A stretch of DNA of 64,000 nucleotides, taken from assembly GCA_002269645.1 (NCBI GenBank), contig NIVC01004000.1, positions 1,789-65,788 on the forward strand, written 5' to 3'. The first letter of the stretch is position 1; every line of letters starts with the position of its first letter. Source of the DNA: Macrostomum lignano (Eukaryota). Positions 35,244 to 56,218 of this stretch are shown here, piece after piece. The notes beneath the pieces are model-generated. The model worked only from the letters and a program-made list of their open reading frames with translations. It was not told where the DNA came from and ran no database searches. The translations under genes were made by a program, and so were the position numbers.

Positions 35244-35752
35244 TCATATGACAAGCTGGGTGCCTGTTACCTCCGCGTCGACACCGTATATTTTCTGAGC
35301 CCCGCTCTTTTTGCGCTTCTTCATCAGAGCAATCTGGTATGATCGCTGGGCCGCGACCAAGTTTAGAATCTTCTCTTTGCGCTCCTTCATTTTCGCTTTT
35401 GCCTCCTTCAATTCCTTCTTGTATTGCTCTTCTTTCTTCTTTTGTTCGGCTCTTCGCCGCAACCTCTCGGCGTTGTCACGCTCGCGCTGTTCTTGCGCCA
35501 GCCGCTGTTCTAGCTCATAGTTTGCTTCAACATTCTGCTGAACTGTGGGGCGGGTTCAATGACTGCATCGAATCAGGTCCTACAGATCGCTACTTTTAAT
35601 ATGCTGGTCCAATAATAACATAATAGTAACGGCGGCACAACTTTGACTCACTCACCCTGCTGCACAGGAGCCGGTTTTTTGCATCCTTCGCTGTATTGTA
35701 CAAAAACCGCGAACAAGATTGCAGGCAATGCTAGGTATCTGAAAAATGCCAT
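35244..35752 (-). CDS. P1: secreted charged-helix protein, 131 aa, uncharacterised
   Basis: Exon 1 35752-35656 MAFFRYLALPAILFAVFVQYSEG|CKKPAPVQQ, donor gtgagt (phase 1); exon 2 35542-35244 (V)QQNVEANYELEQRL..EEQYKKELKEAKAKMKERKEKIL..KKRKKSGAQKIYGVDAEVTGTQLVI; paralog of P2. Exact acceptor is less certain. Confidence 0.8.
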
Positions 35753-36499
35753 TACTTGTTGGCATCCGAAAGGAGCGTTGCCGATAAGATAGATGGGCTT
35801 AGCCTCGCAGCTTTACTTTCCTAGTAAACTACACTTTGACAGCTCGCCCTAGAGTATAGTCTATGGCCTTCTCACTCAGGCTTCAGTGCGCGCGTAAAAT
35901 TCCACTTATTTACTTTTTGTTTCTGGGTAAAAAGATGCAGGGAACCGCGCGGGTGAAGAGTGATTGGAATTCGTCATTCACTCAGCTACATGTTAAAGCC
36001 AACAAATGGCAGCTTGAATCCAACTCGATCTAGCAGCCAAAACACTTTCTCACTCTCAACCACTCGATTGCAAACTAATTGTGACCTATTTAAGCGTGTC
36101 TAAAATAACTACAAAATGAAACTAAGGGAAGAATTTATAGTCTAGATTAATAAGCTGAGAACTCACAACTCGTCAGGTACCAACATCAGGGTTGACATGA
36201 CTACGACGTATCTTCTCCGACCCATCCCATTGGTTCTTCCTCTTCAACCATCATCGGTCTGGCCATCTTCGGTCAACGAGGTAGTTAAAAACTTTGAAAA
36301 ACTGCAACAGAAACCAAGATACCGCACACTGCCCGCATTCACACAGTGCACTGAAATTTACAGTCTCCTGCAGTGGCTCCAAATAAGTTTAAATCTCTAA
36401 ATCTATAACGCTGGCACAGGGGGTCAGTGACGCTGGCACAGGGGGGTCAGTGAAGCACCTGCTGGTGGAAAACAGCTGAGTCCATCCTAGCTGCAGACA

Positions 36500-37670
36500 G
36501 TGGGGGGGGGGTAAGACTGCAAGTTAGAGAGTACAGTGTCCGTCAGAGTGGTGGCTGAGCAGCAGGTCGGTGAGCTGGGGCCCGGTGCCCCGTGTGTGGG
36601 CACGCAGGCAGAGGCCGATCAACATCTGGCGTCGTCTCTGCGACCACGCGGGTCCGGGCCGCCAGCTCGGCGTTGCTCACGCGCTCGGGGAACCGGATGC
36701 CCAGGGCATTGTGCATGAGGTGGCGATGGCAGCCCTCCAAGCTCGCCTGACGAGTGGCAGTCATGGGAACAGCTACCAGCAGCCCGTAGGTCAGCACCGT
36801 CTCAACTGCCGAGCGGAATAGGGCGACGTTCAGGCTGTCGGTGGCGAGCCAGTAGTTGAAGATGGAGCGGAGAAGGTGGGAGGCCCACCAGGCTGTGCTT
36901 GCGGTTGTTGACAATGACATCCGGGTCAGAGACCAGGACACCCCAGATACTTGAACTGGTTGCACAGGGCGATGGTGTTGCTGTCCGGCAGAAGCAGCAG
37001 TGGAGAGTTGGCAATGCCAACATGCAGCACCTCTGCCTTGCCGTAGTTGATGTGGAGCCCCACGCGCTTCCCCTCGTTGGTCCGCCGACTCACCGCCGTC
37101 TGCGCAGCTTTGAGACTGCAGCAGGTCAGCGCCAGGTCGTCGGCGCAGGCGAGGCAGGTCGGCTTGACGCAGGCAAAGCGGGAGCTACGGCGAAGCACCA
37201 CTTCATAGCCGTCTTCATCGCGCAGAGCCAACCGCATGACGAAGTCGATCAGGATGACGAATACAAACAGGTGTCGCTTTGCGGAAGTGGTTGTCAATTC
37301 AGCTTTAGGGCCGTGGTCAGTCTAGACGAAAGCGCCTTGGATGAGCTGTAGAGGTCCATGATCGCCTGGACCAGCATCTGAGAAACTCCATGCTGCTGGA
37401 GGAGCTACGCAATGGCCTGGCCGCCCGGCTGACTGAGTCAAAAGCTTTGCACAAATCTGCAAAAACAATTGACACCGCCTTTTGGCGAGTCTTGCAGGTG
37501 TCTATGATGCACCGGACCGCAGCGACTTGTTTTTGCTGTTGACCGTCCAGGTTGGAAGCCGTTCTGGATATTGAGAAGCCTCTGGTTGATGATGGGTTGA
37601 ATGCGGTTTCGAAGGATGGTGTTAGGACTTTGGCCAGGGTGCACTCCAGGGCGAAGTGACTGATATTGAC
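36500..37670 (-). pseudogene. Degenerate non-LTR (LINE) reverse transcriptase, RTE/RTEX-like
   Basis: Frameshifted pieces IQNGFQPGRST, SIVFADLCKAFDSVSR, FVILIDFVMR, CLACADDLAL, VGLHINYGKAEVL, QFKYLG. Confidence 0.85.
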
Positions 37671-37789
37671 GTACGATATTGACCCACAATATTGACGTAC
37701 ACTGTCGTTTCCTTTACTCACATTTCGAGTTCATACTAGCAAATATTGACTTAATGTTCCCACTTTTATACCTTCATTTTATTTATTCT

Positions 37790-38362
37790 AATTGTGTTGT
37801 ACTTCCGGATGTGCTTCGCGGATTGCTAGCTGGATTACGCTGGGGTGATTGGCCAGGTGCACGCTGTAGCCGCCTTCAGAGAGCCAGCGCTGAGAAGACT
37901 GATCCGACACCAACCTTTGTGAACTGTAGTCTGTTCCCCGGCGGTGTGCGTTGTTGTTTTTTTAGAAGCTCATACGACTTGCCTCCCACGCTGGGATTAG
38001 CTGCATCGATTGGGAAAATACCAGCCCACCTGCTACGTGTATCACATTCCTGGGAGTGCAAATCGACAGCACATCCGGTCTAGCTGCTATCCCTGCCGCA
38101 GAGCAAGACAGATGAGCTGCGGATGTTGCTGCGTGGAGGTTTGAGCGCTAAGAGTCTGTCAAAGCTTCAACTTCAAAAGCTGGTGGGCAAAATCGGCTGG
38201 TTTTTGCAAGGTGGCTCGCCCCGCTCGAGTCTTTCTGCGAGCTCGAATTGACGTCACCAACACCATCAATGGGTGTCATCGCCGGATTCCCGTGGCGGGC
38301 GAGCTCCGCGTTCAACTGGACTGGTGGCAGCATGGCCTTCCGCCTTTCCATGCAATCGTCTC
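37790..38362 (+). pseudogene. DIRS/Ngaro-type (tyrosine recombinase retrotransposon) pol remnant
   Basis: TSPPATCITFLGVQIDS, LPQSKTDELR, LSKLQLQKLVGKIGWF, ARVFLRARID..RRIPVAGELRVQLDWW resemble the DIRS RT C-terminal/connection region; frameshifted. Confidence 0.7.
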
Positions 38363-39118
38363 TGGTGCTAAAGCCCCTGGTGCTAAAGCCCCTGGTGCTA
38401 AAGCCCCTGGTGCTAAAGCCCCTGGTGCTAAAGCCCCTGGTGCTAAAGCCCCTGGTGCTAAAGCCCCTGGTGCTAAAGCCCCTGGTGCTAAAGCCCCTGG
38501 TGCTAAAGCCCCTGGTGCTAAAGCCCCTGGTGCTAAAGCCCCTGGTGCTGAAGCATTTGGTGCTAAAACCACTGGTGCTAAAGCACTTGGTGCTAAAGCC
38601 ACTGGTGCTAAAACCACTGGTGCTAAAACCACTGGTGCTAAAGCCACTGGTGCTAAAACCACTGGTGCTAAAACCACTGGTGCTAAAGCCACTGGTGCTA
38701 AAGCCACTGGTGCTAAAACCATTGGTGCTAAAGCCACTGGAGCTAAAGCCACTGGTGCTAAAGCCACTGGTGCTAAAGCCACTGGTGCTAAAGCCACTGG
38801 TGCTAAAGTCCCTGGTGCTAAAGCCACTGGTGCTAAAACCATTGGTGCTAAAGCCCCTGGTGCTAAAGCCCCTGGTGCTAAAGCCCCTGGTGCTAAAGCC
38901 CCTGGTGCTAAAGCCCCTGGTGCTAAAGCCCCTGGTGCTAAAGCCCTTGGTGCTAAAGCCCCTGGTGCTAAAGCCCCTGGTGCTAAAGCCCCTGGTGCTA
39001 AAGCCCCTGGTGCTAAAACCACTGGTGCTAAAACCACTGGTGCTAAAGCCACTGGTGCTAAAGCCCCTGGTGCTAAAGCCACTGGTGCTAAAACCACTGG
39101 TGCTAAATATCCTGGTGC
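38363..39118. repeat. 15-bp minisatellite CTGGTGCTAAAGCCC
   Basis: About 50 copies, reading GAKAP/GAKTT in the DIRS frame. Confidence 0.97.
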
Positions 39119-39547
39119 TGACGCTTCAGCGCCCTCCATAATTAATCCTACCCGGCAGCTTACACTCCTGCAAGCTGAAACCGAGCAGTCCGTGCCAGCG
39201 GTAATTGCCATAGCAGTTTTTTTCTCTCTAATACCACAATAGACAATACAGTGCTGCACAAATAGCTCGTACTTCTCTATCCTCTTGAAAATCGCAATAC
39301 ATCTAATTGAATGAGAAATTGCAATAAAACAGGCAATTAAAAATGAGTTAAAACACTGTCCTGTGTATTATTTATAAACCGATCCAGTAAAGTAAACGAA
39401 ATTAAATTTCCTGACCAGTAGAACTCTAGAATATTAACAAAACTTCTCAGGCTTTTGTCTTGAGCTGCGCCTTAAACTGTCAATTATCTCGGTTTCGTCC
39501 TTAATAAATAAAACTGCAGCTGATGGTTGCGGAGCGGTCTCCGCAAT

Positions 39548-40096
39548 CTAGAGGATTATTTGCGTACCAGTGGTGGTGGCCACAATGCCTGCGATCTTCT
39601 TCTCGCCTTTCTTCTTCCGCTGCTCCAGCAGAGACTCCTGCTTGGTGCGCTCGGTTGCTATGGTTTCAAGGAGCTGTTTGTTTCGCTGTCGCATTTTCGC
39701 TTTGGCCTCGTCCAATTTCTTCTTGTATTCTTTTTCTTCTGCCTCCTGCTTTTTCTTCTTTTCGGCTTCGTCAGTTTCCTCTTTCGGCTTTTTCTTTAGC
39801 GTGTAAGACTTGTAGAACTCTTTCACTGTTAATATAGCATGGGGAAAAGTGTGTTTTGTCAGAGTCTGTTCATAAACTGACTGACTTTTTAAGGCTTTGT
39901 CATCACGGCTGTTAATGGCATGAAATTCCCCTCTTATAGTCCTTTTTACTGTTTTTACTGAATGAAAACATGCGGTTGGAATTGCCAACTCACCCTTATT
40001 GACCGCCGCTTTGCATCCGCTGCTATAGTCCGGCAGCACAGCTAGCAGAATGACTGCCAGCAACAGGCATTTCATCGACCATTTCAATAGCACCAT
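39548..40096 (-). CDS. P2: secreted charged-helix protein, 126 aa spliced (182 aa if the intron is retained)
   Basis: Exon 1 40096-39994 MVLLKWSMKCLLLAVILLAVLPDYSSG|CKAAVNK, donor gtgagt (phase 1); acceptor ttaacag at 39826; exon 2 39825-39548 ..EEKEYKKKLDEAKAKMRQRNKQLL..RKKKGEKKIAGIVATTTGTQIIL. Confidence 0.85.
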   Translation of the reverse strand: MVLLKWSMKCLLLAVILLAVLPDYSSGCKAAVNKGELAIPTACFHSVKTVKRTIRGEFHAINSRDDKALKSQSVYEQTLTKHTFPHAILTVKEFYKSYTLKKKPKEETDEAEKKKKQEAEEKEYKKKLDEAKAKMRQRNKQLLETIATERTKQESLLEQRKKKGEKKIAGIVATTTGTQIIL

Positions 40097-40542
40097 TTCA
40101 AGCTAATCTGATTTGCAGTCCGAGCTTCTTCTTCTAGCCCGCGTCTCGCAAAGTGCACTTTTGTCTACCTAACTATGATTTTCTCAGCCGCTTCTTTACC
40201 TGTGAGTGAGCCCATAGATAGGGTGGCTGCTGTAGACTGTGGGCAATCTTTTAACTATTAACTGTGCATGTTTTATGGCTAGCAAACTCTGCGAGTTCGC
40301 AATCGATCAAAACGTAAATTTTAACAAAAAAAACTTTGCGAACTTTAGTCCCAGAGATGCCAACCGGAAAAAAACACATGCTAAACTTTCAAAGTCAACC
40401 ATGCACTTGGATGACATTGTTGACTTATCAAGTTTGCAAAGTATCATTGTCATGAACTTAAACAGTATATGCAATGCTTTTGTCAAAGTTCAATCGACTT
40501 GAAAAGTTTACAAAGTACACGCCTGTCTCTACATCCAAGTAC

Positions 40543-41240
40543 CAAGGACGACTTAAGTAGAAGGACGGGAAACCTCGTTTCTTAGAAAATTTTTGAAGGC
40601 ACTTTTTCCCGAAAAAATACACTACGGAGATAGGAAATTTTCATTTTTTCAGCACAAAAATTGCTATTACTTTTGATAGGAGGCAGATCCAGTGCTCATC
40701 TTTTGATATGTTGTGCCTTTTTTATTGCTCTATCGATATTTATAAAGCTTTTAGTTCAGAAAATTAGGATTATATGTCAATTTTTTATTCTACGTACATT
40801 TCCTGTATCTGAAAATCACAAAAATGCATGACACAGCTCCAATATTTGCTTTTATGAACCTGTTTTATCATCTCTGTTACGAATATTTGCTAAACAGTCA
40901 GTTAAGAATGATAAAATAGACTTCTAAAACCAAAGAGCCGAGCCGTGGCATTCTAATGTATTTCAATCACAAGACACGTGGAAATATACGGAGAATAAAA
41001 AATTTACATAGAATCCTAATTTTCTGAACTAAAAGCTTTGTAAATATCGATAGAGCAATAAAAAAGGCACAACATATCAAAAGATGAGCACTGGATCTGC
41101 CTCCTATCAAAAGTAATAGCAATTTTTGTGCTGAAAAAATGAAAATTTCCTATCTCCGTAGTGTATTTTTTCGGGAAAAAGTGCCTTCAAAAATTTTCTA
41201 AGAAACAAGGTTTCCCGTCCTTCTACTTAAGTCGTCCTTG
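40543..41240. mobile_element. Foldback MITE with CAAGG termini, P-superfamily-like, 698 bp
   Basis: About 255-bp near-perfect TIRs; 8-bp TSD CCAAGTAC at 40535-40542 and 41241-41248. Confidence 0.92.
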
Positions 41241-41774
41241 CCAAGTACTTGGAAAGTACTTATCGAATGTACTTTACTTAGGCTGTCCTCGCCACGAGGT
41301 TCCATTGTTGACTTATCAAGTAATTAGCAAGTTTGGTTTGTTTTTTCCTCGGGCAGGCACAACCCCCCTTGGAAGCAGTGTTGCTTTCGCTTTTCTGTGA
41401 TCTTCCTCTCCATGCAGCCACGGTGTGCACATGTACTTTTAACCTGATAAGCAATTAATAGGAAAGTCAAGTAAAGTTTTTCGAAATTCACTGCCGCCAC
41501 ACTTAGTGGAACATGAGTCTGTATTCTGTCTAACTGTAATTGTTGAAAGTGTTTAAGCATTTTTCCAGCATCAGATAAACTAAATACAAAAGTTGCCAAT
41601 GCTAATGAAACAACTACGAGTATAAATGCATTACAGAGGCCTTAAAATGTAGAGGAAATCAAATTGCACTCAATTAACAAATGAAAGCTGGAAAGAAATA
41701 GTAAATGTCTGTCATGGTGTACTAAGCGTAGAGATTGTAAGGTCGTAGCCAACATTTTTGTCCGTGGCCGGCTT

Positions 41775-43521
41775 CTATTTGTATGTGACAGGAGGCGGAG
41801 CGCTCTCGCTTTGCATCCGATTCTTCTTGTTATTTGTGTAGCCCAAACTGACACCACCAATGGTACCGGCGGCAAGCATTCCAGTGCCAACACTGATTCC
41901 GGCTGTTTTTGTCGCACTGGGGCTTTTTTTAGCTGTTTTGCCCACCTTCTCGGCGCTTTGGGCAATATCGGCGGCCGCTTTCGGCGCCTTCTTTCCGCGT
42001 CCGAATACTCGACCGACGCGCCTGCCAACCGCCTTGACCGCTGCGTGCGAATTAGAAGCGGGTTGGGGTTGCGGCTCTCAGTTTCGGATCAGTGCCTGCC
42101 TATACTATAGTTGTAACAATATTCACAGGGGACTGTAGCCTAGTGGTTCAAGGTCGGGGGTTCGATTCCTGATCCTACTGGAACAATTTGTGTCCTTGAG
42201 AAAGACACTTAACCTCTGCATAGCTTCAGTTCACCCAGCTGTAAAATGGGTGCCAGCATTAGCTGGGGTAATTGAGGCTGTGTGTGGCGACCCCCCAGTC
42301 CTTGGACTGAACAGCCGCTGAGATAACTGCGGCTGAGCTGTCGGTTGCACATATTTCCATTACGGCAGCACAAAGTCCCGAGCACATTTAAGTGCGCCAA
42401 TATCAAAACTTTTCGGCCTATGATATAAGCATTCTTTCTTTCAGAATTAAATCTTAGCAGCGCATTCGAGGCCACTCGGCAACTCCCCCATACGCCCCCG
42501 AACCAAATGGGTGATTCCCTATGAGCCCTGAATCAATTAACAGGGTGATTCCTCTAGAGGCCTGAACCTACTAGGTGATTCCCTATGAGCCCTGAACCAA
42601 CTGGGTGATTCCCTATGAGCCCTGAACCAACTGGGTGATTCCCTATGAGCCCTGAATCAATTAACAGGGTGATTCCTCTAGAGGCCTGAACTTACTAGGT
42701 GATTCCCTATGAGCCCTGAACCAACTGGGTGATTCCCTATGAGCCCTAAATCAATTAACAGGGTGATTCCTCTAGAGGCCTGAACCTACTAGGTGATTCC
42801 CTATGAGCCCTGAACCAACTGGGTGATTCCCTATGAGCCCTAAACCAACTGGGTGATTCCTCATGAGCCCTGAACCAACTGGATGATTCCCCTCATGAGC
42901 TCTGAACCAACTGGGTGATTCCTCATGAGCCCTGAACCAACTGGGTGACTCCTCATGAGCCCTGAACCAACTGGGTGATTCCTCATGAGCTCTGAACCAA
43001 CTGGGTGATTCCTCATGAGCTCTGAACCAACTGGGTGATTCCTCATGAGCCCTGAACCAACTGGGTGATTCCTCATGAGCCCTGAACCAACTGGGTGACT
43101 CCTCATGAGCCCTGAACCAACTGGGTGATTCCTCATGAGCCCTGAACCAACCGGGTGATTCCCCCCATGAGCCCTGAACCAACTGGGTGATTCCTCATGA
43201 GCCCTGAACCAACCGGGTGATTCCCCCCATGAGCCCTGAACCAACTGGGTGATTCCTCATGAGCCCTGAACCAACCGGGTGATTCCCCCCATGAGCCCTG
43301 AACCAACCGGGTGATTCCGCAAGAGCACTACTGTAAACCAATTTTGATACTAATGCCAATTGGGTAATTCTCTTATGCATTATAGTATAATTTCTAATTT
43401 TAAGGCACATAAGCAAGGCTGACTACTTACCACCTTTCAATTTCCTAAAGCAGCCATCGCCAGGTTCGATGAGGATCACCAGCACAATGGTAAATAACAA
43501 TGCTAATCTTATGTAACCCAT
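41775..43521 (-). CDS. P3: secreted cationic amphipathic peptide precursor, 118 aa
   Basis: Exon 1 43521-43431 MGYIRLALLFTIVLVILIEPGDG|CFRKLKG, donor gtaagt; exon 2 42040-41775 (A)VKAVGRRVGRVFGRGKKAPKAAADIAQSAEKVGKTAKKSPSATKTAGISVGTGMLAAGTIGGVSLGYTNNKKNRMQSESAPPPVTYK. The ORF track gives the wrong frame here. Confidence 0.88.
42128..42352 (+). mobile_element. CORE-type SINE, family B copy with internal head deletion, inside the P3 intron
   Basis: TAGCCTAGTGGTT..GGTTCGATTCC..GTGTCCTTGAG..CAGTTCACCCAGCTGTAAAATGGGTGCCAG. Confidence 0.85.
42500..43316. repeat. 29-32-bp minisatellite TCATGAGCCCTGAACCAACTGGGTGATTCC (P3 intron)
   Basis: About 27 copies. Confidence 0.95.
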
Positions 43522-43954
43522 TATAGGTCCCAGTTATTCTCTACTCTCTTGTATGACTGCTCTATTGAAGTGATATTTCTACCAAGATGACAACTACAAC
43601 CGGCAAGTGATGCATCGAGGCTCAAGTTGCTTTTTTCGGCAATCAAATTTTTAGCGATTTCAAGCATTTAGGTTGATAGTAGATTACCATAGACATGATC
43701 TGACTGCCGTATAATAATAAAAAAGTCCCTTTATTAAAAAAGTAACAAATTACTGCAGCAAACAACAAGCTCTTATTCACTGCACCAGTATAATTATAAT
43801 TAGTCGTCTTGCAGTTTTGTTCGAGATAGAATTAAGTAAAACTTAAGCAAAGACCACCTTTGCAATGCATTTAAATGTTTATATTCGAATAAATGACATT
43901 ATTACGCTGTGGTTTATTTTATTCTGATCACCAAGGCGGATGGTGATGGGTGGG

Positions 43955-44216
43955 TGGTTACCAAGGTGGATGATTACCAAGGTGGGTGATTACCAAGGTG
44001 GGTGATTACCAAGGTGGATGATTACCAAGGTGGACGATTACCAAGGTGGGTGATTACCAAGGTGGGTGATTACCAAGGTGGGTGATTACCAAGGTGGGTG
44101 ATTACCAAGGTGGGTGATTACCAAGGTGGGTGATTACCAAGGTGGATGATTACCAAGGTGGGTGATTACCAAGGTGGGTGATTACCAAGGTGGGTGATTA
44201 CCAAGGTGGGTGATTA
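43955..44216. repeat. 16-bp tandem repeat CCAAGGTGGGTGATTA
   Basis: About 16 copies between P4 and P3. Confidence 0.95.
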
Positions 44217-44725
44217 CGCGACCCGCCAATTAAAGTCGCAGGATGGTAGACAGGCGTGGCAGCGAGGTCCTCGAGTGCAGAGCCATAAGTGGAGAACCAA
44301 ATAAAAACGAAACTTAAGTTAGAAGACTACTGTGCAAGCTTAAAAGAATTGAGTACATAGTCACTATAAGAATATATGAGATATAATCTGTGAAGCACAA
44401 CTGAAACTGTCTAAGAAGCTTTATTTATATTATATGTTAAAACTAAAGTCACGAGTCCTCTGCCGATGACATACCGGTAAAAATAACATCCAGTAAAACA
44501 AAATTTACAAAAACACATTTCAACTGCTCAAAGTGCAATTTTGGCAAACTACGTAGATCTGGATCTAATTTAAAAGAAACTGTGCTGATTTAAAAATAAA
44601 TTTTAAAAGAAAAATTTTTGGTAAATTGGCTATATACTTAACAATTGAATACGCAACGAGTATTTCGAGTATAAGAATACCGCAAAGTACACATTATTTC
44701 CTTATGCATGTCTGTGCAGGGTCTC

Positions 44726-46114
44726 TTAGTGGGTGACGTACGAACCGCTGCTCATGCCTTTTTTCTTCTCTTTTTCCCCCACGTACACGGCGCCCCCCAG
44801 TGCCGCACCTCCAACCGTGCCACCAATGAGGAGCGAGCGCGCCGTGCTGAAGCTCTTGGACTTCTTGGCCACCTTGCCAACGTCGTCCGCAGAATTCGCA
44901 ATGACTTTGGCGGCTTTTGGGCGTCTGGCTATTTTGAACACCTTGCCGACTCTCTTGAAAGCTGGGGGCGCGAGAAGTTTTGTTAGAATGAAATGAATGA
45001 ATGCCCAGTGGCATTTAGAAAATAATAGCAATAAAAATTGGGATACGCTTCGGCGACATCTTCCCGCAGCCGCAGCCCTGAGGCAATTCTGCATGCAAGC
45101 GCGCCTCACACAGGGTGTACACAAGCGCGCCTCACACAGGGTGTACACAAGCGCGCCTCACACAGGGTGTACACAAGCGCGCCTCACACAGGGTGTACAC
45201 AAGCGCGCCTCACACAGGGTGTACACAAGCGCGCCTCACACAGGGTGTACACAAGCGCGCCTCACACAGGGTGTACACAAGCGCGCCTCACACAGGGTGT
45301 ACACAAGCGCGCCTCACACAGGGTGTACACAAGCGCGCCTTACTCGAAATCTAATGGTAAATGTTTTGAAGGCAACTTTTCGCCTTTATATTGGTCTTGT
45401 AATTATTTTAAACTTTTTTTTAAGTGACAGACCAATTTAACATAAAAAATCGATTAATGCGTCGTTAGAGCAGCATGTGAGGCACAAAATAGTGTGATTA
45501 GAACTTTCTCTGACACTATTAAGAGACCCAATCACTGTTTTAGTGTTGAAAATCGGGAAATTTCCTATCTCCTTTGTGTATTTTTCCGGTGAAACCGCTG
45601 CCTTTAAAACCATTTCTGGACGAAAAGCTTTATGAATATCGATAGAGCAATAAAAAAAGGCACAACATATCAAAATATGAACACTGGATCTGCCTCCTAT
45701 CAAAAGCAATAACAATTTTTGTGCTACAAAGATTAAATCCTCTTATCTCTCTAGTGTATTTTTCGGCGAAAAGTTGCCGTCAAAATATTTACCATTAGAT
45801 TTCGAGTGTTGCGTTCTTCTACTTAAGTTGTCCTTGGGTGTACAGCGGCCCTTTGACTGTCTAATCATCAGGCATGTACACTTTCTGTGCCCGAATCGCA
45901 CGACAGCTCCCTCCCGCGTTGATCTCAGTACGAGCGTGTTAAAAAAGGCCGTATGAATTCGAACAGTCTCAAGTTTTACCAATTTCATTGCCAACTGCAA
46001 GACTGACTACTTACCACCTTTCAAAGCCTTCAATTTCTTGACACAGCCTTCACCAGGTTCGATGAGGATCACCAGCACAATGCTAAATAGCAATGCTAAT
46101 CTTATGCATCCCAT
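44726..46114 (-). CDS. P4: secreted cationic amphipathic peptide precursor, 111 aa
   Basis: Exon 1 46114-46015 MGCIRLALLFSIVLVILIEPGEG|CVKKLKALKG, donor gtaagt; exon 2 44961-44726 (A)FKRVGKVFKIARRPKAAKVIANSADDVGKVAKKSKSFSTARSLLIGGTVGGAALGGAVYVGEKEKKKGMSSGSYVTH. Confidence 0.9.
45096..45339. repeat. 26-bp tandem repeat CAAGCGCGCCTCACACAGGGTGTACA
   Basis: Nine perfect copies plus a 10-nt partial copy. Confidence 0.97.
45122..45836. mobile_element. Second, diverged copy of the CAAGG foldback MITE family (P4 intron)
   Basis: Right end CTACTTAAGTTGTCCTTG and sub-terminal block match 40543-41240; 8-bp TSD GGTGTACA at 45114-45121 and 45837-45844; left end replaced by the 26-bp array. Confidence 0.8.
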
Positions 46115-46439
46115 TTAGGTTGCAGTTAAGTTATTTTTTAAACAGACACTCCTGTAGGGCTGTTGAAGAACAGATTAAACCGATATTTCTACGAAGATTA
46201 CGAAAAAGTTTTGTTGGCAATAAATAAATTTCGTTGGTTTGACAATAAATTGCCATAGACAATTTTAAATTGGCATCTTAAGAAAGACGCCGCTCATCTA
46301 AAATGCGATCAGAAGCAAACAGGAGAAACTGAGAGTAGGTGGGCTTGTTAAAATTGTGTTTTGACACAGCCTATGTCAAATTATTTATTGTAAAAAGCCT
46401 ACAGCGTCATCAAAACAGCATGACGTTAGAATCTAAGAC

Positions 46440-47505
46440 TTAGAAGAGGAAGGAGAAGATAAGAGGATAGATGAGATGAGAGATTAAAGGAAAGAGGAGA
46501 TAAGAGTATAGATGAGATCAAATATGAAAGGAAAGCGGAGATAAGAGGATAGATAATTTGAGAGATGAAAGGAAAGAGGGGATGAGAGGATAAATGAGAT
46601 GAGAGATGGAGAGATGAAAGAAGAAATGAGATGAAAGAAGAGATAAGAGGAAAGAAGAGATGAGAGATGAAAGAAGAGTTGAGGGATGAAAGAAGAGATG
46701 AGAGGAAAGAAGAGATGAGAGGAAAGATAAGATAAGAGGATAGATGAGATGAAGGATGAGAGATGAGAGGAAGAAGAGATAAGAGGATAGATGAGATGAG
46801 AGATGAGAGATGAAAGGAAAGAAGAGATGAGAGGATAAATGAGAGGAGAGATGAAAGAAGAGATGAGATGAAAGAAGAGATAAGAGGAAAGAAGAGATGA
46901 GATGAAAAAAGAGATGAGAGATGAAAGAAGAGTTGAGAGATGAAAGAAGAGATGAGAGTAAAGAAGAGATAAGAGGATAGATGGGATGAGTGATGAGAGA
47001 TGAGAGGAAGAAGAGATAAGAGGATAGATGAGATGAGAGATGAGAGATGAAAGGAAAGAAGAGATAAGAGGATAAATGAGAGGAGAGATGAAAGAAGAGA
47101 TGAGATGAAAGAAGAGATGAGATGATAGATGAGAGGAGAGATGAAAGAAGGGATGAGATGAAAGAAGAGATGAGATGATAGATGAGAGGAGAGATGAAAG
47201 AAGGGATGAGATGAAAGAAGAGATGAGAGATGAAAGAAGAGATGAGAGGATAGATGAGATGAGGGATGAGAGATGAGAGGAAAGAAGAGATAAGAGGATA
47301 AATGAGATGAGAGATGAGAGGAAAGAAGAGATAAGAGGATAGATAAGATGAGAAATGAGAGATGAAAGAAAAGAAGAGATGAGATGATAGATGAGAGGAG
47401 AGATGAAGAAAGAAATGAGATGAAAGAAGAGATGAGAGGAAAGAAGAGATGAGAGATGAAAGGAAAGAAAAGAGAGGAGAGAGAGGAGATGAGAGGGGAG
47501 ATTAG
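46440..47505. repeat. Purine-rich low-complexity satellite (GAAAGAAGAGATGAGA-like)
   Basis: Almost no C on the plus strand for 1 kb; lies between divergent genes P4 and P5. Confidence 0.95.
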
Positions 47506-47925
47506 AGAGCGGAGGTAGGCCAGATGATTGCTATTGTGAAGTTTCAAAGGACTCGAGGGCCAGATAGAAAGGCAATTCGCAGGTCGCGTGTGGAATCTAT
47601 CACTTCTTTCGTCTTCACCTTGAATTAAACCCATGGGATTCTTCCGTCATAGCCGAGCAGTAAACTATTTATGTATTTATTTGTTTAAATAATCTTCAAG
47701 TTACAAAAATAGTATCTACATCAATCGATAGAGAGTAGTTGTATCTATGGTCTGAATTAATTATATGTAGTAATTCTGGATATAGAAAAAAATCTGATTG
47801 CCCCAAATAACCAAGCAAGCTAGCGAAGGCCAATATTGAAATAATATTGATTTTCCAACTAAAACAACAGACCCACACAAATTTCTTCATGTACAAGCTC
47901 CAGTAAATGCTCAGGCAGACTTCTC

Positions 47926-49463
47926 ATGCGAACTCAAAGCTTTATAGCAATTTACTTTATTCTGCTCACGATTGTCAGCCAGTTTCCAAGCGGCGGCCAA
48001 TGCTGCCCGAAAGCAGTAAAATCATGTGAGTTTATCGAGTTTATGGAAATAATGCTTTATTATTAATTTGCACATTGAATGTCTGAGAAATTCAATAATT
48101 TTATTAGTAGGAAGTGAAGTCGAGGGAAGCTGTGATTGGTGAGAGCAGGCTGTGATTGGTGAGAGAAGCTGTGATTGGTGAGAGCAGGCTGTGATTGGTG
48201 AGAGCAGGCTGTGATTGGTGAGAGAAGCTGTGATTGGTGAGAGAAGCTGTGATTGGTGAGAGCAGCTGTGATTGGTGAGAGAAGCTGTGATTGGTGAGAG
48301 CAGCTGTGATTGGTGAGAGAAGCTGTGATTGGTGAGAGCAGCTGTGATTGGTGAGAGAAGCTGTGATTGGTGAGAGCAGCTGTGATTGGTGAGAGCAGCT
48401 GTGATTGGTGAGAGAAGCTGTGATTGGTGAGAGCAGCTGTGATTGGTGAGAGCAGGCTGTGATTGGTGAGAGCAGCTGTGATTGGTGAGAGAAGCTGTGA
48501 TTGGTGAGAGCAGCTGTGATTGGTGAGAGCAGGCTGTGATTGGTGAGAGCAGCTGTGATTGGTGAGAGCAGGCTGTGATTGGTGAGAGAAGCTGTGATTG
48601 GTGAGAGCAGTTGTGATTGGTGAGAGCAGCTGTGATTGGTGAGAGCAGCTGTGATTGGTGAGAGCAGGCTGTGATTGGTGAGAGCAGCTGTGATTGGTGA
48701 GAGAAGCTGTGATTGGTGAGAGCAGCTGTGATTGGTGAGAGCAGGCTGTGATTGGTGAGAGCAGGCTGTGATTGGTGAGAGCAGCTGTGATTGGTGAGAG
48801 CAGCTGTGATTGGTGAGAGCAGCTGTGATTGGTGAGAGAAGCTGTGATTGGTGAGAGCAGCTGTGATTGGTGAGAGCAGGCTGTGATTGGTGAGAGCAGG
48901 CTGTGATTGGTGAGAGCAGCTGTGGTTGGTGAGAGTAGCTGTGATTGCTACAATTTATTCAATCCTTGTTTGCAGTGAAATCGCGAGCGAAATCGTTTTT
49001 TAAGCTGAAATCTGCTAAGAAAGCCGGCGACGCGCCGGGCAACGCAAACAGGAAGTCCAGCGTTACCGACATGGATAATCCCGGGTGTAAAAATCCCTTT
49101 TTTCCCTGCAACGAGGGCGGCCTGGTGAAATCCGTGGGTAAAAAGGCCGGTGCGGCTCAAAAGGGGAAATCAAAAAAGTCCGCCGACTTGGATAATCCCG
49201 GCTGCCAGAATCCGTTTCTGCCCTGCAAAAAGAGCGGAGGCTTCTTTAAAAGAGCGGGCGGGGCTATCGGTCCACACAAAAAGAAAATCGGCTTCATAGG
49301 TGCTGGCGCTGCCACAACCGGCTTGGCCGCTACTGGAGCTGCTGGCATTGCTCTATCCAAATCCGGAAAAAGTGATCCGACAGCTCAAACAATTGATCCC
49401 GACAGAACGGGTCTCGCTGGTGGAGCGAAAGCTTATCTTGGTATTGACAAACAAACCGCGTGA
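47926..49463 (+). CDS. P5: secreted Lys/Gly-rich precursor with two Cys-loop modules, 195 aa
   Basis: Exon 1 47926-48025 MRTQSFIAIYFILLTIVSQFPSGGQCCPKAVKS, donor gtgagt (phase 1); acceptor tttgcag at 48975; exon 2 48976-49463 with DMDNPGCKNPFFPC, DLDNPGCQNPFLPC and IGFIGAGAATTGLAATGAAGIAL. Confidence 0.88.
48128..48946. repeat. 19/20-bp minisatellite GCTGTGATTGGTGAGAGCA(G) (reverse CCAATCAC) filling the P5 intron
   Basis: About 42 copies. Confidence 0.97.
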
Positions 49464-55850: not shown

Positions 55851-56218
55851 GCTCATATTTCAAAGCTCTGATATTGAAAATAGACAAGAATTGTATTTAT
55901 AATATGTGGTAGGAAATATCAGAAGCAATTTTATTTGGTATTAGCTTTTTTAATATTCAAGATTTGGCCTATACAGTATGCACCTTTCATTGTCAAATAG
56001 TTTTATTATGTTTGGCATTGTCAGATCTATAGACATTAGTAATATAAACTTTATAGTGCTAATAATTTTATGTTTACTTCGTCATTTCTATGTTAATATC
56101 AATTTAATAAACCCAATAAAAATAAGTTGGCTTGGCCATGAGGCACTAACTCATGTCATGTGGCCCTTGGCTTAGTTGAGTTGATTATTATAAATATTCA
56201 ATTGTTAGGCTTAGCTAA

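Follow-up and report, generated by a model that had tools for sequence, protein, structure and literature searches.

Two tandem genes, here called P3 and P4, lie on the minus strand of a 64,000-nucleotide (nt) stretch of the genome of the flatworm Macrostomum lignano (NCBI GenBank assembly GCA_002269645.1, contig NIVC01004000.1, positions 1,789 to 65,788; hereafter, the window). They are paralogues in a gene family seen only in Macrostomum, already annotated in GenBank and uncharacterised. Our reading of the two products, which is tentative and falls short of probable, is that they are lineage-restricted, secreted, strongly cationic and all-helical membrane-active peptides. The 23 N-terminal residues would form a cleavable signal peptide, releasing a mature chain of 88–95 amino acids (aa) that starts with Cys and has a net charge of +17. 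A first helix (+10 or +11, with no acidic residue) and a conserved second helix, separated by a Pro hinge, would use their amphipathic faces to lie flat on anionic membranes, and a hydrophobic GxxxGxxxG helix would insert and self-associate, permeabilising the bilayer like the glycine zippers of other pore formers. The single N-terminal Cys may join two chains. The likely role would be antimicrobial defence or lysis of prey or foreign cells, through gland or epithelial secretion. The gene models, their transcription (through the source of the annotation), the sequence features, the divergence of the paralogues and the orphan status are observations; we infer signal cleavage, secretion, membrane helicity, pore formation and the biological role from them.

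Gene models and predicted anatomy of P3 and P4

Reading of the minus strand between positions 41500 and 46400 yielded two-exon genes with GT-AG phase-1 introns (GTAAGT...AG) for both P3 and P4, and positions 41775..46114 are exactly those bounded by the stop codon of P3 and the ATG of P4 (Table 1). The spliced product of P4 was 100% identical to PAA48998.1 (BOX15_Mlig005534, 111 aa) and that of P3 was identical to PAA48997.1 (BOX15_Mlig014360, 118 aa), both annotated as "hypothetical protein"; P3 was 97–100% identical to the matching M. lignano "hypothetical proteins" in GenBank. Because the annotation of M. lignano was built from RNA sequencing (RNA-seq) transcript assemblies (PMC5730564), P3 and P4 are transcribed and spliced as modelled. 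Locus L002 (NIVC01004000.1, 65,788 nt, GCA_002269645.1) matched window positions 56114–34726 at 100%. The six-frame list of open reading frames (ORFs) and a tRNA scan were uninformative, and a bacterial reading was ruled out because the sequence is eukaryotic with GT-AG introns.

The only further database entry, the older partial model UniProt A0A1I8JMV2 (P0002), joins the opening 50 residues encoded by P4 exon 2 (positions 44961–44812) to P3 exon 2 (positions 42040–41775). This fusion uses a GT inside P4 exon 2 and carries a frameshift in an A-run, and the model is probably a prediction or assembly artefact. Its name, "Gly-zipper_YMGG domain-containing", was not reproduced for P0002 by the current Pfam (E<=1), and no Gly-zipper family, including Gly-zipper_YMGG, matched P3 or P4 in Pfam (E<=10).

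The N-terminal region of both precursors contains a basic residue, a 13-residue hydrophobic core and a helix-breaking EPG(D/E)G directly before the Cys, with small residues at positions -3 and -1. Cleavage of a 23-residue signal peptide before Cys24 is therefore predicted. The resulting mature chains of P3 and P4 would comprise 95 and 88 aa, respectively, with a net charge of +17 each, and in both the single Cys stands at position 1 (Cys24 of the precursor). The parts that the first-pass annotation had listed were recovered from the translations of both genes: the first 25–26 mature residues carry +10 and +11 with zero acidic residues, and a PKAA hinge, the motif IA.SA..VGK.AKKS, a Gly-rich segment and a basic tail of 16–20 residues follow. 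The segment, which had been described as GxxxG-type, proved to be a canonical GxxxGxxxG (GTIGGVSLG at residues 89–97 in P3 and GTVGGAALG at residues 81–89 in P4). The glycine-zipper motif of Kim et al. in 2005 is reportedly defined as GxxxGxxxG, or small-xxx-G-xxx-small, within a hydrophobic helix.

Amphipathicity was evaluated using the hydrophobic moment (Eisenberg scale, 100 degrees, 18-residue windows), with significance estimated by shuffling the residues within each segment. The maximal 18-residue moments were 0.73 in P3 and 0.66 in P4. For helix 1, the best window exceeded the shuffles with P = 0.02 and 0.04 and the whole segment with P = 0.003 and 0.05 in P3 and P4, respectively; the corresponding values for helix 2 were P = 0.0025 and 0.00055 for the best window and P = 0.0001 and 0.00015 for the whole segment. 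The helical hydrophobic periodicity claimed earlier for the mature N-termini thus goes beyond composition-matched expectation (helix 1, P = 0.003–0.05). The same script gave 0.66–0.74 for cecropin A, moricin and stomoxyn, and 0.55–0.74 with melittin added. AlphaFold2 monomer predictions placed helices at residues 24–44 and 48–78 of P4 and at residues 24–43, 49–67 and 71–108 of a P3 variant. With a predicted signal, a charge of +17 and amphipathicity above chance, P3 and P4 show the features of the linear cationic alpha-helical class of antimicrobial peptides.

Paralogue divergence and relation to known peptides

The contrast between conserved signal and diverged mature regions, pointed out in the first-pass annotation, held up on alignment. 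The signal regions of P3 and P4 differ at 6 of 69 nt and share 20 of 23 aa, and the identity of the mature parts, put at about 40% by eye, was 34 of 79 aligned exon-2 codons (43%). A 26-nt exact match was common to the exons of the two genes (expected 0 times in shuffles). By the Nei-Gojobori method, the proportions of synonymous (pS) and nonsynonymous (pN) differences were 0.18 and 0.06 in the signal codons and 0.86 (saturated) and 0.44 in exon 2, respectively. The likeness of P3 and P4 at the DNA level is confined to a block of approximately 130 nt (P4 46128–45997 vs P3 43536–43413), which starts 14–15 nt before the ATG and ends 18 nt into the intron. Within the diverged part, the tail motifs KK, M.S.S and VT and the position of the hydrophobic segment are kept, and the residues inside the segment mostly differ. 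Further upstream, at 51–83 nt, a 16-nt element (TCTTSGTAGAAATATC) is common to P3 and P4 only and was found nowhere else in the window; it is possibly a core-promoter element.

The locus is present in three copies in the assembly: NIVC01004000.1 (the window), NIVC01000464.1 (L001) and NIVC01001374.1 (L003). Exon 1 of both genes is invariant across the copies. One variant of P3 carries S70G, G93A, V94G and G97A, and one variant of P4 carries E96V and K97N; no synonymous change was seen, and the six nonsynonymous ones all fall in exon 2. This pattern is suggestive of positive selection among the copies, without reaching significance (6 nonsynonymous vs 0 synonymous, P = 0.19). In the L001 copy of P3, the three substitutions within the hydrophobic segment (G93A, V94G and G97A) abolish the canonical zipper. 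The P4 coding sequence was better kept across the three copies than the non-coding flanks (2/672 vs 53/2889; Fisher P = 0.0009), and P4 is therefore a constrained gene; the corresponding comparison for P3 was not significant (P = 0.33). The gene spans were 1389, 1672 and 1401 nt for P4 and 1747, 1719 and 1499 nt for P3 with near-identical coding exons, and it is in the introns, probably through their repeat arrays, that we infer the span differences to lie.

Searches returned no relatives outside the species. Word-seeded searches of 5.8 billion (5.8 G) proteins matched P3 and P4 only to M. lignano proteins themselves, and hmmsearch with a P3+P4 profile against 1.84 G representative proteins retrieved M. 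lignano entries only. Pfam-A hmmscan (E<=10) gave nothing for either protein, including cecropin PF00272, phmmer against PDB chains gave nothing relevant, and Foldseek with the AlphaFold2 model against PDB gave only generic helical bundles, all with E>1. Rfam over the whole window was likewise negative. Within the window, tblastn and a pattern scan revealed no further P3/P4 member and added only three neighbours with Cys at position 1. In the databases searched, P3 and P4 thus form an orphan family without relatives outside M. lignano.

Cecropin A, stomoxyn and moricin are close in architecture: as in P3 and P4, the signal leads into an N-terminal helix that is cationic and amphipathic, a Gly/Pro hinge and a more hydrophobic helix rich in Gly and Ala come next, and the hydrophobic moment lies in the same range. 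Members of the cecropin family have mature chains of approximately 31–39 aa, are free of Cys, and carry the hydrophobic helix at the C-terminus, which is often amidated. Whereas cecropin A, stomoxyn and moricin comprise 31–42 aa, P3 and P4 comprise 88–95 aa and are 2–3 times longer than cecropins. They differ further in having a conserved additional helix in the middle, a Cys at the N-terminus and a basic tail of 16–20 residues past the hydrophobic helix, and in lacking Trp and a C-terminal Gly amidation signal. The helix-hinge-helix architecture of the cecropin family is present, but its PF00272 profile, size, lack of Cys and C-terminal position of the hydrophobic helix are not. Since P3 and P4 have no sequence or profile relation to cecropins, the term "cecropin-like" denotes an analogy, not membership. 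They are best filed as an orphan flatworm family with a new, longer variant of the design that combines a cationic amphipathic helix with a hydrophobic helix, outside the cecropin family.

Other systems resemble single parts of the design. Glycine zippers are required for channel formation or permeabilisation in VacA, in Tde1/Tse4 of the type VI secretion system (T6SS), in TelE of the type VII secretion system (T7SS), and in Caulobacter CdzC/D (PMC10240207). As in the N-terminus of Helicobacter pylori VacA, Tde1/Tse4, TelE and CdzC/D, a secreted protein (predicted in the case of P3 and P4) carries tandem GxxxG motifs in a Gly-rich helix of weak hydrophobicity; however, those proteins are bacterial and unrelated in sequence, none was matched by hmmsearch over the 1.84 G proteins, and P3 and P4 add a long polycationic amphipathic N-terminal part. 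Mussel myticalins combine a conserved signal with a divergent mature peptide (PMC5577615), and P3 and P4 share with myticalins, frog preprodermaseptins and conotoxins a tandem or multigene arrangement, a near-identical signal and a strongly diverged cationic mature region. In contrast to these signal-conserved effector families, there are only two paralogues here, and the conserved block includes bases of the untranslated region (UTR) and the intron; P3 and P4 also differ from myticalins in lacking an anionic propiece and in having the intron directly after the signal peptide. Among flatworms, the secreted schistosome protein MEG-8.2 has been shown experimentally to lyse cells via amphipathic helices (PMC12998952). 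Like the predicted P3 and P4 products, MEG-8.2 is small, secreted and restricted to its lineage and has several amphipathic helices, but it shows no homology to them; MEGs have many micro-exons and occur in a parasite gland, whereas P3 and P4, from a species that is free-living, have two exons and are much more basic.

Secretion, anchoring and other readings

Whether the chain is secreted or anchored depends on the later hydrophobic segment, which comprises 20–24 uncharged residues bordered by K/R at both ends and followed by KKNR or EKEKKK. Its 19-residue Kyte-Doolittle mean peaked at 1.32 in P3 and 1.53 in P4, below the usual transmembrane threshold of 1.6, and approximately 30–40% of its residues are Gly. 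Rough, position-independent sums of Hessa-type apparent free energies (dG) were +4.4 and +3.5 kcal/mol, respectively. A segment of such weak hydrophobicity would therefore probably pass the translocon; its hydrophobicity appears insufficient for a stop-transfer anchor to be called with confidence, and these crude estimates lean toward secretion over stable anchoring. A glycosylphosphatidylinositol anchor was ruled out because a hydrophilic tail comes after the hydrophobic segment.

P3 and P4 could nevertheless be small type I single-pass membrane proteins, with the cationic helices luminal or exterior, the zipper segment spanning the membrane and perhaps oligomerising, and the basic tail of 16–20 residues in the cytosol; their role would then be structural or regulatory, for example as a component of the secretory-granule or surface membrane, and not lytic. 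The charge pattern around the segment suits this arrangement, as do the retention of the segment position and tail motifs despite synonymous saturation, the typical use of GxxxGxxxG for packing of transmembrane helices (PMC10240207), and the single long helix that AlphaFold2 makes of P3 residues 71–108. Against these points stand the marginal hydrophobicity and Gly content given above and the copy of P3 that has lost the canonical zipper; moreover, positive charge is equally dense on the supposed luminal and cytosolic flanks, and thus the positive-inside rule gives no direction. On balance, we consider such an anchored role rather unlikely. The same wording applies, in our estimation, to secreted polycations that target polyanions instead of bilayers, such as glycosaminoglycans or mucus, extracellular matrix, adhesive or cement material, granule-packing partners or seminal fluid, in which case the gene cluster described below would be a battery of gland secretory products. 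Five clustered genes all encode small, signal-bearing proteins whose mature chain would start with Cys and whose charge lies between +12 and +21, and the mature starts of both P3 (FRKLKG) and P4 (VKKLKA) fit the Cardin-Weintraub-type pattern XBBXBX. Many transcripts specific to glands of M. lignano (prostate and adhesive organs) encode small, novel secreted proteins. However, strict helical amphipathicity and a glycine-zipper segment would be needless for polyanion binding, and the literature searched contained no expression record that places the genes in a gland.

A precursor of neuropeptides or hormones, cut at dibasic sites into short bioactive peptides, would also start with a signal peptide and contain several KK, RR or KR pairs, and GRR and GKK in P3 could be amidation signals. 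Nevertheless, the dibasic sites and Gly positions differ between P3 and P4 (P4 has ARR-P, with no Gly), repeated peptide units are absent, and the basic residues show helical periodicity instead. This reading is highly improbable; it was rejected on the ground that P3 and P4 do not share the cleavage sites.

Several observations weigh against membrane-active peptides. The best-conserved part of the mature chain is helix 2, a specific motif beyond physico-chemistry that could mean a specific partner. The conserved exon-1 tract takes in synonymous sites as well as UTR and intron bases, so that a short tract of gene conversion would account for the conserved signal equally well, and the evolutionary pattern is anecdotal because there are only two paralogues. 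The segment of approximately 21 uncharged residues with basic flanks and a short basic tail looks like a classic type I anchor, and the rough dG scale ignores position effects. The AlphaFold2 models were of low confidence (predicted local distance difference test score, pLDDT, 50–65) without usable alignment depth. P3 and P4 have neither an anionic pro-region that could neutralise the peptide nor a conserved dibasic/Gly processing site; protein, Pfam and PDB searches revealed no homology to known antimicrobial peptides; and the gene identifiers and peptide strings were absent from full-text literature searches and from the supplements of the M. lignano papers searched.

The first-pass annotation had proposed analogous, probably convergent antimicrobial or cytolytic peptides, with small type I membrane proteins as its alternative. 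The anatomy behind this proposal is real and non-random, and the pattern of conserved signal and diverged mature region fits it, but Pfam and PDB provided no sequence or profile relation to cecropins or melittin. Taken together, a membrane-active role for P3 and P4 appears plausible on these grounds, and it may gain modestly from the weakness of the stop-transfer segment, from the way the paralogues diverge and from the surrounding gene cluster.

Genomic neighbourhood and significance

P3 and P4 are flanked by three further small genes, N131 and N126 on one side and N195 on the other, and the five correspond to the consecutive GenBank entries PAA48995–PAA48999 (window 35244–49463). The positions of all features are listed in Table 1.

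Table 1. Positions of P3, P4, their upstream elements and the neighbouring genes in the window
Feature	Position	Strand	Description
16-nt element of P4	46182..46197	-	TCTTCGTAGAAATATC; 68–83 nt upstream of P4 ATG
P4 exon 1	46015..46114	-	100 nt; ATG, signal peptide MGCIRLALLFSIVLVILIEPGEG, then CVKKLKALKG; phase-1 end before GTAAGT
P4 intron	44962..46014	-	1053 nt; contains perfect 26-nt minisatellite (45096–45340) and interspersed-repeat copy (45653–45790)
P4 exon 2	44726..44961	-	stop codon included; helix 1 remainder, RRPKAA hinge, helix 2, GxxxGxxxG (aa 81–89), basic tail
16-nt element of P3	43572..43587	-	TCTTGGTAGAAATATC; 51–66 nt upstream of P3 ATG
P3 exon 1	43431..43521	-	91 nt; ATG, signal peptide MGYIRLALLFTIVLVILIEPGDG, then CFRKLKG; phase 1
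P3 intron	42041..43430	-	1390 nt; 30-nt minisatellite, ~27 copies (42496–43326)
P3 exon 2	41775..42040	-	stop codon included; helix 1 remainder, APKAA hinge, helix 2, GxxxGxxxG (aa 89–97), basic tail
N131 (PAA48995.1, Mlig007023)	35244..35752	-	97-nt exon 1 (signal + CKKPAPVQQ), 113-nt phase-1 intron; Lys/Glu-rich
N126 (PAA48996.1, Mlig025199)	39548..40096	-	103-nt exon 1 (signal + CKAAVNK), 168-nt phase-1 intron, Lys/Glu-rich exon 2
N195 (PAA48999.1, Mlig010768)	47926..49463	+	195 aa; exon 1 47926–48025, intron 48026–48975, exon 2 48976–49463

In all five genes, a phase-1 intron separates an exon 1 of 91–103 nt, which encodes the signal and 7–10 further residues, from a single second exon. 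The predicted mature chains all start with Cys, and basic residues follow (CKKPAP, CKAAVNK, CFRKLK, CVKKLK and CCPKAVK), net charges range from +12 to +21, and four of the five proteins have no further Cys. By these features, the five genes look like a lineage-specific secretory gene cluster, and the rest of the window contains ordinary-looking genes. N131 and N126 look by eye like paralogues of each other. N195 is transcribed divergently from P4 and resembles P3 and P4 in architecture: its signal is followed by CC and a basic amphipathic stretch, and a hydrophobic segment rich in Gly and Ala (dG sum, +4.0) precedes the tail. Homology of N195 to P3 and P4 was rejected (hhalign probability, 0.3%), and the likeness is architectural only; N195 is itself an orphan, with matches only in M. 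lignano and none in Pfam. Upstream of its hydrophobic segment, two near-identical loops, D(M/L)DNPGC(K/Q)NPF(F/L)PC, lie between basic stretches.

The locus is rich in repeats. A 261-nt inverted repeat between P3 and N126 (40543–40803 and 40980–41240; 98% complementary, 176-nt spacer) looks like a foldback element or an interspersed element resembling a miniature inverted-repeat transposable element (MITE), and a partial copy with 84% identity lies in the P4 intron (45653–45790). Minisatellites occupy the P3 intron (42496–43326, 30-nt x27), the intergenic region (43949–44217, 16-nt x17) and the P4 intron (45096–45340, perfect 26-nt x9.4). Most of the 1.8-kilobase (kb) spacer between P4 and N195 is taken up by approximately 1 kb of purine-rich, imperfect GAGA/GAAA-type repeats (46457–47507). 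They skew GC/AT to an extreme degree and create a spurious ORF of 402 aa. Between N126 and N131, ORFs at approximately 36540–37720 (L002 18394–19572) contain motifs of the reverse-transcriptase type by eye, for example ...FADLCKAFDSVSR..., and probably represent a degraded non-long-terminal-repeat (non-LTR) retroelement fragment in the cluster.

A far-reaching and quite improbable extension is that PAA48995–PAA48999 form a Macrostomum-specific battery of secreted effectors, in which the N-terminal Cys would serve covalent dimerisation or Hedgehog/Spitz-type N-lipidation. P3, P4 and N195 would then be polycationic glycine-zipper pore formers of a new class, armed with a lipid or a disulfide, for defence or prey lysis.

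In the literature searched, we found no description of an antimicrobial or lytic peptide family from free-living flatworms. M. lignano is a tractable model, offering RNA interference by soaking, transgenesis and a transparent body. The gain would be moderate either way, as the present results provide a candidate list for experiments and no resolved mechanism. Should P3 and P4 be anchored in membranes or bind polyanions, they would still belong to a compact, lineage-specific secretory gene cluster with an unexplained "Cys at position 1" design. If they are membrane-active, they would constitute the first such effector family in the free-living flatworm lineage, and their unusually long design, with three helices and a glycine zipper, would be useful for understanding how a cationic surface-binding helix cooperates with a zipper.

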